Below, piece by piece: positions 4,450 through 9,890 of a stretch of 64,000 nt of DNA. The stretch's first letter is position 1; each line of letters starts with the position of its first letter. The notes beneath the pieces are model-generated. The model was not told the origin of the DNA. It ran no database searches and saw only the letters and a list, made by a program, of their open reading frames with translations. The DNA is from Auanema rhodensis (Eukaryota > Animalia > Nematoda). The translations under genes were made by a program, and so were the position numbers. The stretch covers positions 4,898,001 to 4,962,000 of the forward strand of contig OZ059898.1 in assembly GCA_964057225.1 (NCBI GenBank), read 5' to 3'.

Positions 4450-6872
4450 ATGTCAAATGGAGGTATAATCATATACAATATATATAAATTTTATATAATA
4501 ATTATATAAATTTAGATGTTATAGCTGGAGCCATTTTAGGCATTTTTAACAATGTCTTTATTCTAATACTTGCTGCTATTTTTCTCATTTTTCATAGAAA
4601 AGAAATTATTTTAACTTTTAATAATTTACGGAATGGAGAAACTGATAATACTGTTCCATTGTCATCCAGGTTAGTACATTGCAAAAATTGAAAACTGCTA
4701 TGGAAGTAAGTGTGAAAGGAAAAAAGAGAGGAAAATTTCGATAAGCAATTGAAGAAGCATCAAAATGTGTCTGATAACGACGAATAATTACAGGGTACAT
4801 CCAGAAGAACATCGTTTAGAATCTGTTAAAGTAGAGCCGAATCGTTCAAGGTAAATTAAATATATTAGAAATACGAGAAAGTATGATTTTATATCTTTAG
4901 ATTCTCTGTCAGTCAAACGAAGCGAAATGCTGCTTTTGTCGATGCTGAGAGACCGACAGTAATACATCAACATCATGTATTTAGAGAAAATATTTAATTT
5001 TGATATATTACAATTTATTTTATAGAATGAAATAGAATGTGAACATGAGACAATAATTGTTCCTTTAGAAGAAAGAATATCAGAGGTTTTTATTTGAAAT
5101 TTTCTTTTGTTGCTTGACCAATTACCTTTAAGGCTACACTAAATATGGAAGAATCCGAAAACGTAGCACAATCATCATCAGTATGTGATAACAAATTATC
5201 AAACTCATATTTATGTATTCAGGTTGCGCATGTTCACACAGAGAACTTGAAAACAGTTTCGCGAGATTCAAAAACATCATATGAAGCTTTCATGGATGAA
5301 GTATTCTTGAATGAGCCATCTACTAAGCTCCAAGTTTTTATGACGGATAACACTGAAGCTGTTTATTCTTCTGGAGAATCAGATATCTCCCATGTTGGAA
5401 TACAATATGATACTCTACCCTATACGTATGACATGCCTCCAGTCAACTTATATGATGTAGTTGATGACCAGCAATATGCATATGACTCAGCCGATTCTTT
5501 AGATGACACCATTATCGAAGTAGTTCAAGATTCAGACATTCATGAATCAAATTTTGCCGATTTCACTGAAAGATTACATCACACCGACGATCTACCACAT
5601 ATACGATTTTCTGAAGTATTCAGCGCCGACATTCTCGATAAGATGAGTGCTAATGCTCATAGAGATTGGTTCTCACCTTATCAAGAATCATTTAAACATT
5701 TTAGTATTGTAACTGAATCACCAACTTTTGAGACGCATATTCATCTTGGTGCTAGTTACGATTCACCTCCCGATCAAACTGCATACGATAACATTCTAAC
5801 GTATACTCCAGATTTGCCTGAACACCCGATTTCTGATAGCGTTCACTTGTTTCATCACAAATCATATGGCTTAGATGAACACGTTGATAAATATTTTCAT
5901 GACGCTCTTCATGCCCATGCTGCTGATGAGCACATTATCGAAACCTCACCTTATCAACCTATTCATGGTTTCGTTGATATCTCTGCAAATGAGCTCCAAA
6001 CTAGAAGTGAAAATACGCCACTTCCGATTGACCATACACGCAGTAGCTCAGGTGGAAGTGTTGACGAGTGTTACATTGATAGTTCAATGTATAAAAGAAC
6101 GGATAGTAATCTAGATTCAATAGAAAGTTTTGGAGGATTCGTATCAGATTATTACACTCATGTTGAAGACTTATTAAGCAGATACGGACAAGTAATGTTC
6201 GAAGGACCATTATCATCAGTTCAAGTTCCAGAACAAACTTCTATTACCAAAAAAAAAATTGATACATCTCAGGATAATAAAACGTCTTTAGTTTTGGAAC
6301 CAATTATGGAACATAGCCATGAGGAAGAGAGCAGTATATACTCTTCGTCAACAACTATTCATGGCAAACAATTGGAGAAATCAGACGATAATCATACTCA
6401 CATTCAGCAATCATTAGAACAGTCTCCTGTCATAATAAAAAGTGACAATTATCATGACATTAGCACTGATAATAAGTCAGAAACAACTAAGAGTATTCAT
6501 ATATCAACAGTAACATCATCATCAGTTCATCAGGAGTCTGATTCTCATATATCAAATATTCCAGCTTTATCTTCTGTTGATACTATAAACACATTAACTA
6601 AACGAAATGCATTAATTCGCTCAGAGCACCAAAGCTTTGATAATGATATGAGCTATACAAGCGGATTGTATGATTCTACAGTAGAAGTACATACCTCAAC
6701 TTCACATAATGCTAATAGTTCTGATGATGACGATTTTGATCCTAATTATAAGCTTAATCTAATAAATCAATATGATTCTTATACTGCTTCTCATAATAGA
6801 TCTGATTATGAACCTTCTAGTTCTGATATATTTGAATGGCATTCTGAGGCTCTTGACTCTTTTGAACGTTAA
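4450..6872 (+). CDS. Single-pass membrane protein: N-terminal TM helix plus long acidic, Ser/His-rich low-complexity tail; unknown function
   Basis: The spliced model reads MSNG|DVIAGAILGIFNNVFILILAAIFLIFHRKE... Several short GT-AG introns join in frame to the 575-aa ORF 5145-6872. An upstream ATTTCAG acceptor lies near 4400. Confidence 0.7.
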
Positions 6873-7290
6873 GGATTAAATCAAGAGCGCCTGTTTGGAA
6901 CTTCTTCATCAGCAATGTTATCTGTAAGCTTTTAAAAAAAATTTTATTTAAAATATAACTATTCATTGCAAATTGTAATATTAATATTTCAGAACGAAAG
7001 TAAAGGTCGTATTGAAGAAAGAAAAGAGTAACTTTGACTACAAACATATTTTCACTTTGTATTGCTTTAATTTATTATTTTTGATAATGGTGTCATGAAG
7101 CATTATATTTATATTTAATTCATTTTATATCATAAATTATACAAATTTATAAGAAAACAACAGAAGAAATAATTAGTATTCAGTAAAAGATCGATATAAG
7201 CTGTTTTTAGGAACAATGAACCTGTGTCCTTCTAAAACAAACCATAAGAAATAACAGTCTAATGTAAACCTCACGCTCACGCTCACCACG

Positions 7291-7325
7291 CATACAACAT
7301 ACGGCGAACCTTAGAAACAGAGCTA
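7291..7325 (+). promoter_or_regulatory. Candidate proximal sequence element (PSE) of the U5 snRNA gene
   Basis: GGCGAACC-containing stretch about 35-45 nt upstream of the U5 start, loosely resembling the nematode snRNA PSE. The call rests on position only. Confidence 0.35.
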
Positions 7326-7343
7326 CGCGATACCATCTCGGGT

Positions 7344-7461
7344 ATCCTCTGGTTCCTTTGCAATTCTCCGTGAAAATCTTTCGCCTTTTACTAAAGATTT
7401 CCGTGCATAGGGACGCATATGAGTAAATAAATTTTTTGGAATCCCCTCGAAAGAGCGGGAT
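7344..7461 (+). ncRNA. U5: U5 spliceosomal snRNA
   Basis: 5' CTCTGGTTCC; invariant loop I in AAATCTTTCGCCTTTTACTAAAGATTTCCGTG; Sm site AATTTTTTGG (7430-7439); terminal stem-loop ATCCCCTC-GAAA-GAGCGGGAT. Confidence 0.95.
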
Positions 7462-7533
7462 AATTTGTGTTTGAATTTTTTTTAAAAATTTAATTAATTT
7501 TTTTATTGAAATTTAAATTTAAAATGTACAGAG

Positions 7534-8792
7534 ATGGATACTGCTGGCAGAGATTATGTGAAAGATAATATGCCTATAATAGGCTTGGGAACTTATCAAG
7601 TTTCATTTTTAATTAATCTGTATACTGAGTATATTTCAGATTCGTAAAGAGCAAGTGATTTTTGATATAATTGATGCTGCACTCGCGACTGGCTATCGTT
7701 TCATTGATACGGCCCAAATCTATGGTACATACTTTAAAAATATTTATCATTTGCAAATTTTCTTAGGCAATGAAGCTGCAATTGGAAAAGCTCTTAAAGA
7801 ATTATTACCTAAATACGGACTTGAAAGGCTTGGAATTGTTTTCGGATAATGTCGTAATGTTAATAGTTTAGAAGAGATATTTTCATTACAACGAAACTTT
7901 CTCCTGCTAATCACGGAGCTACTAAAGCGGGTCCAGCAATAATGCGGTAAAAAAGTATATGGTTTTAATATGAAATAATGTAAAACAGGTCATTGGAAGA
8001 TTTACAAATTGAATATATAGATCTACTCATAATTCATTGGCCAGGTGTTACAAAGTTGAAGGTACGATTGCCTGGCGATTGCCTTGCATAAGCATTAAAA
8101 AAATATTTTAGGTTCATGATCCTAAAAATTCCATTTTGAGACATGAAAGTTATTTAGTTATGGAAGAGTTTCACAGTATATCATTGTTAAAATAAGTAAA
8201 TTAAATGTTAATTGTTTAAAGGGGAAGGAAAACTTAAAGCTATTGGTGTTTCCAATTATGAAATCAAGCATTTGGAAGAATTACTTGATAAAGCAAATGT
8301 TCTTCCAGCATTGAACCAAGTAAGCATATCGAATGTGGTTTCAAAATATGAATAGTTCAGGTTGAATATCATCCTCATTTTCATCAGACTGATCTTGTAA
8401 ATTATTGTAGGACAAAAGGAATTCTCTTCCAGGTTCTCCTCAAGTCTAAGCACTTCATAATAATAATTTCAGGCTTATAGCAGTTTAGGAAGTCCAGATT
8501 ACAGAGATGAATTGTTCAATGACTCTCACCTTAAGAGTCTTGCTTCTAAGTATAAAACGGATGTTCCTTTATTTCTGTTAGCATGGGCTGCATCACAGGT
8601 TAACCGCGTTATGTTTTGAAAATTTCTTATTTTTTTCAGGGAATAAGTATTTTGCCGAGAAGTTCGAATCCAGAAAGAGTAAAATCTAACTTTCTGTCCA
8701 AAGACATTAAAGTTAGTAAGGAAGATATAAATGTGTTACTTGAAAATGGCATGAATAGCAAAGTTTGTTGGGATCCAAGCACAGTTGTTTGA
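7534..8792 (+). CDS. Aldo-keto reductase family protein (about 10 exons)
   Basis: The spliced translation contains MPIIGLGTYQ, GYRFIDTAQIYGNE, DIFITTKL, YIDLLIIHWP, LKAIGVSNY, NQVEYHP, QAYSSLGS and ILPRSSNPERV, which are canonical AKR motifs with the catalytic D, Y, K and H. Confidence 0.93.
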
Positions 8793-9272
8793 ATTGTTTC
8801 CAACTTCTGAGAGATATTCTACAAATTTATTAAACATTATTATCCTTATTATGGAGTGAAAAACATTTCACGCAAACTCTGAATAAAAAAAACGTTGTGT
8901 TTGGCTGGTTGCATGTTGAAAATTTTTGAAATACTTCATAGTTTGCTCTCATTATATTATCTTTTTAAGCAGGTCTATTTAACACTTGTATGGAATTTAG
9001 TTACAATGATAATAAGATTGAAATGCGGCTTATATTTATCTTAAGATAAACATGTTAAATATATATACTTTTTCAACTTTGATCGTTCAGCTTTTGGGGC
9101 GCTTTGAATGTCACGAGTAATCTTCGTTTGATTTAATAAAATTATGTTCTATTATTTCTGGGATTCTGGGTATAATTAAAAGGAAAGTTATCGCTATGCT
9201 GCTTCTTATCAGAACTAGGAATAACTTAGAAAAAGTTATTGAAATTGAAAGCGTTAAAGAAAACAAAAGTAT

Positions 9273-9345
9273 CGACCACGGCAGGATTCGAACCTACAAT
9301 CTTCTGCTCCGTAGGCAGACGCGTTATCCATTGCGCCACGCGGCC
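9273..9345 (-). tRNA. tRNA-Arg-ACG: tRNA-Arg (anticodon ACG)
   Basis: The reverse complement reads GGCCGCGTGGCGCAATGGATAACGCGTCTGCCTACGGAGCAGAAGATTGTAGGTTCGAATCCTGCCGTGGTCG. It folds as a cloverleaf with A and B boxes and is followed by T-runs (Pol III terminator). Confidence 0.97.
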
Positions 9346-9787
9346 ATAAGATTGACCCATCTTATGCAATATAACTGTATCTTTAGAGCTTTTAAATTTA
9401 ATAAATTAGTATTTATTATTACAATAAATTTTATTGTTTGAACTATTTACATAATTATAAAAAAGTTAGAAATCATTAAATAAACATTTAAAATTTTTTA
9501 TATTCAAAGAAAAAACTTTTCAGAAGAATGAATGCTTTATAATACATGTTGAATAAATCGTTTGAGATACTCAGTTTCTTTAAATAAATAATTTCAAAAT
9601 AAGAAAGAAATTTTTTCTTGATGACCTGCTTTATTGCAATCTTGATACTGGGAAGAGGCTTTCAAAGATGACACTAGTTTCCCAGCAATAAGAGCACTTT
9701 TTCCAAATAACTAGAGATAGCTATAAAAAGAAAATACATAGAAGAAGATTAGTTGTAACAAAATAAGGAAAGTACTTCTCAGAAAAA

Positions 9788-9802
9788 GAGGAAGGAGAGA
9801 GA

Positions 9803-9876
<74 letters not shown>

Positions 9877-9890
9877 GAGAGAGAGAGAGA
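9788..9890. repeat. (GA)n microsatellite / polypurine tract
   Basis: Uninterrupted GA repeat at about 9806-9873 with GAGGAA interruptions on both sides. Confidence 0.95.

Follow-up and report, generated by a model that had tools for sequence, protein, structure and literature searches.

The analyzed stretch, referred to below as the window, comprises 64,000 nucleotides (64 kb) of Auanema rhodensis DNA (contig OZ059898.1, positions 4,898,001 to 4,962,000). Within it, the end of a protein-coding gene, a U5 snRNA gene, and an aldo-keto reductase (AKR) gene follow one another on the forward strand. Their features, numbered from the first nucleotide of the window, are the following:

5223-7030, + strand: 3' part of the upstream gene, a 547-aa exon followed by a short last exon, with the stop near 7003-7030
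7131, 7182, and 7215, + strand: PAS-like hexamers of the upstream gene
7287-7303, + strand: proximal sequence element (PSE), the promoter element of U5; its sequence CACGCATACAACATACG differs at 2 positions from the consensus CACCCATATNANATACG
7344-7461, + strand: dispersed U5 spliceosomal snRNA gene (RF00020 in Rfam) whose Sm site is canonical
7462-7531, + strand: A+T-rich spacer, including runs T8 and T7, seen by direct reading
7524-7526, + strand: out-of-frame upstream ATG, the beginning of a uORF of 14 codons overlapping the AKR start
7525-7533, + strand: candidate trans-splice acceptor TGTACAG/AG, with AG at 7530-7531 and an alternative AG at 7532-7533
7534-8792, + strand: AKR gene, 10 exons, 290 aa
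7534-7599, 7640-7724, 7767-7827, 7872-7946, and 7989-8061, + strand: AKR exons 1-5
8112-8175, 8222-8319, 8361-8432, 8473-8598, and 8640-8792, + strand: AKR exons 6-10
8882-8887, + strand: AKR poly(A) signal AATAAA, 90 nt after the stop

The U5 gene was recognized with the Rfam covariance model RF00020, which matched positions 7344-7461 with a score of 77.4 bits (gathering score 40) over model positions 1-117 of 117, a match that takes in stem-loop I and its invariant loop. This agrees with a preliminary description of the same DNA, in which the end of U5 had been placed at about 7461. When the whole 181-Mb assembly was searched with the Rfam model, the window copy obtained the top U5 score, and the Rfam alignment revealed an Sm site (an A, a U run, and GG) followed by a 3' hairpin. 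The PSE consensus CACCCATATNANATACG was derived from the 5' flanks of 20 dispersed or array sn/SL RNA genes of the same genome. It describes an element common to dispersed U1, U2, U4, U5, and SL2 genes that ends 39-42 nt before the RNA +1, the distance for the window U5 being 40 nt. A match with at most two mismatches occurred only once on both strands of the 64-kb window, and this was the element of the U5 gene itself. Six more dispersed U5 copies (three on C4, two on C5, and one on C7) are 97-98% identical to the window copy, which is set apart from them by the two bases just before the Sm site. The likeness between the window copy and these six is confined to the RNA-coding part and the PSE, and the other flanks are unrelated. 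Such a pattern points to selection on an autonomous gene and not to retroposition. In agreement with this, the possibility that U5 is a retropseudogene was ruled out, since the PSE, which lies outside the RNA, is kept at the right spacing in every dispersed copy. Judged from these features, the window U5 looks like a functional, self-sufficient snRNA gene. No common motif that could represent a 3' box was found in the 3' flanks of about 20 sn/SL genes of the genome, in line with the published view that a conserved 3' box is lacking in C. elegans (PMC11125478).

A genome-wide survey indicated that most genes for Sm-class RNAs reside in long tandem arrays, accompanied by a few dispersed copies. 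The arrays are as follows, those of U1, U2, U4, and SL1 being located on C3, C1, and C4:

U5 array: C8:10.43-10.53 Mb, 371-bp unit, at least 48 copies
U1 array: 727-bp unit
U2 array: unit of about 2.47 kb
U4 array: unit of about 472-490 bp
SL1 array: 252-bp tandem unit, the SL1 RNA genes carrying the canonical 22-nt leader

The U5 array copies are 93% identical to the dispersed ones and have a poorer PSE (4 mismatches). Their Sm site is devoid of its two A's, both of which are present in the window copy. For the other arrayed RNA families, too, it is among the few dispersed copies that the best PSE matches are found. The genome also contains at least four SL2 RNA genes, which implies that it has SL2-type operons. 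With respect to the surroundings of the other dispersed U5 copies, the one at C7:15.45 Mb, which has a good PSE, is followed by open frames on the same strand about 35-70 nt downstream. These frames resemble internal exons of a cuticlin/ZP-like gene, with weak CUT_C and ZP-C matches, and this U5 copy is probably intronic or lies in the 5' flanking region of the gene. No same-strand coding sequence was found near the other five dispersed copies. The three C4 copies (16.33-16.44 Mb) lie among repeated blocks, and two of them have a common 3' block that ends in an acceptor-like ATTATTTCAG about 65-110 nt after U5.

The ten exons of the AKR model join into 873 nt with no internal stop. Eight of its introns are of the GT-AG type and one is GC-AG: intron 3 begins with a GC donor at 7828-7829 (AG/GCTTGG), at a junction that carries GT in N. 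americanus and A. caninum. Two exons matched Pfam family PF00248 with 22.5-23.3 bits at a cut-off of 24, as may be expected from pieces of only 29-33 aa. Orthologues were retrieved in two steps: exon 10 was used in an exhaustive search, and its best match, a T. circumcincta protein, then served as the query of a word search. They are annotated with PF00248, show about 60% identity, and come from Ancylostoma caninum, Necator americanus, Angiostrongylus, Haemonchus placei, Nippostrongylus, and others. All ten exons aligned, with 55-70% identity and identical boundaries, to strongylid orthologues of 289-290 aa. In the alignment with these proteins, exon 1 reaches their residues 1-2, so that the ATG at 7534 corresponds to the conserved start. 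An AKR protein of the species itself was not found: the exon 10 search returned only fragments of at most 55% identity, and the word search returned the orthologues of about 60%. When the genome was searched with the A. caninum orthologue, the best match was the window AKR, which is the single orthologue in this genome. Four public runs from one study, the type of which was guessed to be RNA, contained 0.40-0.43 of the sampled 31-mers of positions 7300-8800. A share of about 0.40 is expected if the words of spliced exons alone are present, which hints that AKR may be expressed as a spliced mRNA. By its AKR similarities, the genome belongs to the strongylid branch of clade V or lies close to it.

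The end of U5 and the AKR start codon are separated by 72 nt on the same strand. An AT/U-rich spacer of about 70 nt had been noticed here in the preliminary description, and its presence was confirmed: the 70 nt at 7462-7531 are 90% A+T and 53% T, corresponding to the 99th and 98th percentile, respectively, among the 70-nt tiles of the window. The A+T content of the spacer is higher than that of all 17 other dispersed sn/SL 3' flanks checked (mean 69%, maximum 76%), and the AKR introns contain 74% A+T versus 90% in the spacer. This segment may act as the 3' flank of U5, as the U-rich tract of the AKR acceptor, as an A+T-rich core promoter, or as a terminator, and in the last role it may shield AKR from polymerases arriving from U5. 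It is closed by the AG at 7530-7531, and the second AG (7532-7533) and the start codon (7534-7536) come next on the same + strand. Direct reading thus upheld the earlier placement of an acceptor ending at 7531 and a same-strand AKR ATG at 7534. In A. caninum, N. americanus, A. cantonensis, and H. placei, an acceptor of the TTTCAG or TTTTAG type is located 1-5 nt upstream of the orthologous ATG, while in T. circumcincta it is found 45 nt upstream. The AG at 7530-7531 is positionally homologous to the acceptors of the relatives, and its TGTACAG context is weaker than TTTTCAG. Based on these comparisons, trans-splicing at 7530-7531 is likely, and it would remove the out-of-frame ATG at 7524. By its geometry alone, the locus resembles a nematode operon, with same-strand units about 100 nt apart and an acceptor-like AG.

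The upstream gene is represented mainly by its 547-aa exon (5223-6863), which is rich in S, D, and H. Neither a Pfam family nor, in a word search, a homologue was found for this exon, and we regard the gene as an orphan or fast-evolving one. Its likely 3' end, as marked by the hexamers at 7131-7215, is separated from the PSE by only about 70-150 nt, and about 500 nt lie between its stop and the AKR acceptor.

The preliminary description had raised the question of whether the U5-AKR adjacency is conserved in relatives. This was not the case at any of the five strongylid orthologue loci inspected (T. circumcincta, A. caninum, N. americanus, A. cantonensis, and H. placei), which are distant relatives with about 60% protein identity. 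Neither U5 nor any other Rfam family was found within 4.7-5 kb upstream of the AKR orthologues of these five species, and a local comparison of the U5 parts 7344-7368 and 7408-7461 with the DNA upstream of the relatives' AKR also gave nothing. The orthologue locus of D. viviparus included 49 nt of upstream sequence only and is therefore uninformative with regard to the pairing. In strongylids, the order of genes is HLH (-), AKR (+), a thioredoxin-domain gene (-), and Mybbp1a (+). This neighborhood is absent from the 64-kb window, and the best HLH match in the A. rhodensis genome is located 192 kb away on the same contig. The loss of the strongylid neighbors, together with the distant position of HLH, indicates that the U5-AKR pairing is derived. 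To judge from this comparison of gene order, the rearrangement that created it would also have taken away the ancestral upstream region of AKR. All five strongylid orthologues keep the start codon without any U5, four of them with the acceptor 1-5 nt before it, which argues that AKR runs from an ordinary promoter located elsewhere. By a rough estimate that assumes about 22,000 genes and about 35 dispersed sn/SL genes, the chance of at least one such neighbor pair arising per genome is roughly 1 in 5, and at this level of approximation the U5-AKR adjacency is not statistically remarkable.

Several systems described in C. elegans are relevant to the interpretation of this locus. There, snRNA loci located in sense upstream of coding genes are a regular feature (PMC6390993, Gomez-Orte et al. 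2019). As in those loci, the A. rhodensis U5 is a Pol II snRNA gene with its own promoter that lies in sense, a short distance upstream of a coding gene, and the downstream gene has a normal structure and a poly(A) signal. The differences are that no more than 72 nt separate the two genes, that a probable trans-splice acceptor closes this gap, that the snRNA is U5, and that chimeric RNAs were seen in C. elegans, whereas the A. rhodensis pair is known from DNA sequence. Disruption of Integrator in C. elegans leads to chimeric snRNA-mRNA transcripts and to upregulation of the downstream sense genes; the read-through transcripts can be spliced and polyadenylated, and those derived from SL genes can be translated, whereas U1- and U2-derived chimeras are untranslated (PMC6390993). 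A second comparison is offered by a reporter composed of the C. elegans U2 gene, about 75 bp of its 3' flank, and GFP, which is off in wild-type worms and yields strong GFP after ints-4 RNAi (Waddell & Wu 2024, PMC11125478). It shares with the A. rhodensis locus the succession of snRNA promoter and transcript, short 3' flank, and open reading frame. However, it is an artificial, in-frame fusion without a trans-splice acceptor, whereas the natural locus has a candidate acceptor that could strip off the snRNA leader. The third system, the SL2-type operons of nematodes, resembles the locus in having same-strand units, a U-rich gap of at most about 100 nt ending in an acceptor, and SL2 RNA genes in the genome. 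In contrast to such operons, no polyadenylated mRNA gene forms the first unit, which means that the CPSF/CstF link to SL2 is missing, and the pair is not kept in five relatives; the likeness is one of geometry only. Finally, C. elegans outrons measure 59 nt at the 10th percentile, 369 nt at the median, and 2099 nt at the 90th percentile (PMC3730108, Saito et al. 2013). An AKR outron of 250-450 nt would be of ordinary length and, like other long outrons that hold small genes, would be discarded after trans-splicing. No example of an outron harboring a PSE-driven U5 gene was found in the literature.

On balance, we lean towards the view that U5 and AKR are two independent genes that became neighbors through a lineage-specific rearrangement. 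According to this model, the PSE at 7287-7303 would set a Pol II start at 7344, and the U5 transcript would be cut by Integrator shortly after 7461, as it is in C. elegans and other metazoans. The 5' end of the AKR mRNA would be produced by spliced-leader trans-splicing at the putative acceptor AG 7530-7531, leaving 2 nt before the ATG. The AKR pre-mRNA would begin at a conventional Pol II start distinct from that of U5, and two positions may be envisaged: (i) upstream of the PSE, which would give an outron of about 250-450 nt containing the U5 gene, or (ii) inside the A+T-rich spacer, which would give an outron of at most 70 nt. Considering the range of outron lengths in C. elegans, either position would be ordinary. 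For the same reason, the argument made earlier that the spacer leaves little room for a separate promoter is weak. In normal worms, U5 read-through would be expected to add little AKR mRNA, and such read-through is probably a minor, conditional event. Overall, constitutive U5-driven expression of AKR is unlikely. Read-through into AKR upon Integrator failure is likely by analogy with C. elegans, the phenomenon being already known in that species (PMC6390993).

The independence of the two genes is nevertheless challenged by several observations: the spacer measures only 70 nt, a distance that Pol II leaving a busy U5 gene should traverse; the spacer is unusually A+T- and U-rich in comparison with other snRNA 3' flanks; and the 70-150 nt between the 3' end of the upstream gene and the PSE leave little room for a promoter. 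Furthermore, since its ancestral upstream context was lost, AKR had to acquire a new source of transcription, and co-option of either U5 or the upstream gene may have been one way to gain it. The scarcity of space upstream of the PSE keeps both of these co-option models alive. In the model based on the upstream gene, Pol II would read on from the orphan gene, AKR would be the downstream cistron trans-spliced at 7531, and U5 with its own PSE would lie inside an intercistronic region of 330-400 nt. This arrangement would fit the common orientation of the three units, the distance of only about 500 nt from the upstream stop to the AKR acceptor, the presence of SL2 RNA genes, and the loss of the ancestral AKR context. 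Typical nematode operon spacing is about 100 nt. The gap here is several times larger, and since the upstream gene has no detectable homologue, conservation of that pair gives no comparison in its favor, so we consider such an operon unlikely. In the model based on U5, the strong form of the proposal made in the preliminary description, most of the AKR pre-mRNA would come from the U5 +1, Integrator would free the snRNA, and trans-splicing at 7531 would rescue the remaining RNA. The operon-like geometry, with a 70-nt U-rich spacer ending in an acceptor, the scant promoter space before the PSE, and the loss of the ancestral promoter context are compatible with such a bicistron, as are the splicing, polyadenylation, and, for SL-derived RNAs, translation of C. 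elegans read-through transcripts (PMC6390993). Yet the pairing is absent in all five relatives, a close same-strand coding sequence occurs at only one of the six other dispersed U5 copies (that on C7, with apparent internal exons), U1- and U2-derived chimeras are untranslated (PMC6390993), and the U2 reporter gives no GFP in wild-type C. elegans (PMC11125478). A U5-headed bicistron thus appears very unlikely to us, and we give equally little credence to the related claim that polymerases (Pol II) initiating at the U5 PSE supply a meaningful share of AKR mRNA in the wild type, with an output that rises when Integrator activity falls, as under metal stress.

Between these models and full independence lies a conditional arrangement, in which AKR would have a weak promoter of its own and a drop in Integrator activity, for instance under metal stress, would let U5 read-through add translatable AKR mRNA, thereby coupling a detoxifying enzyme to RNA-processing stress. 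Such a switch would be in line with the upregulation of sense genes downstream of snRNA loci after Integrator depletion in C. elegans (PMC6390993) and with the rise of misprocessed, polyadenylated snRNAs caused by cadmium in that species (PMC6631800), and the acceptor, which precedes the start codon 72 nt past U5, would strip both the snRNA leader and the upstream ATG. However, the idea is built wholly by analogy, read-through is expected at any sense neighbor and hence is no sign of selection, and the pairing is not conserved; for these reasons we judge a selected switch to be quite unlikely. It is also conceivable that one of the partners is dead, either because this U5 copy is silent or because AKR is a decaying relocated copy. 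The GC donor of AKR intron 3, the TGTACAG acceptor that is weaker than the TTTTCAG of relatives, and the two divergent bases before the Sm site might be taken as signs of decay. Against this, the AKR reading frame runs unbroken through 10 exons and belongs to the single orthologue in the genome, the word share in the four runs fits a spliced mRNA, and the PSE and structure of U5 are intact. GC-AG introns, moreover, form a normal minority class. Inactivity of either gene is therefore highly improbable, and the existence of two functional, independent neighbors remains our preferred explanation.

If the pairing is incidental, as this explanation holds, the locus represents another case of the arrangement already described in C. 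elegans, namely a sense snRNA just upstream of a coding gene, and its value lies in annotation: a functional-looking dispersed U5, the PSE consensus of the genome, and an intact AKR orthologue. If, on the other hand, U5-started polymerases were to feed AKR, Integrator cleavage could replace poly(A) cleavage for a downstream trans-spliced mRNA, and the locus would offer a natural read-out of Integrator activity. Its compactness, with 250 nt from the PSE to the ATG, would allow a clean test.

Some minor observations concern AKR transcripts and the 3' side of the gene. No spliced leader was seen at the 5' ends of transcript contigs of AKR orthologues from other species, and these contigs therefore do not bear on SL1 versus SL2. 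In another strongylid, three Logan transcripts of the AKR orthologue have the coding part in common and three different upstream sequences, none of which is a spliced leader. The junction lies 20 nt before the called start codon, and the divergent parts represent either alternative leader exons or assembly chimeras. Downstream of the window AKR, about 480 nt past its stop, a tRNA-Arg(ACG) gene (9272-9346, - strand) is convergent with it, and beyond the tRNA gene there is a long (GA)n microsatellite at about 9795-9890.
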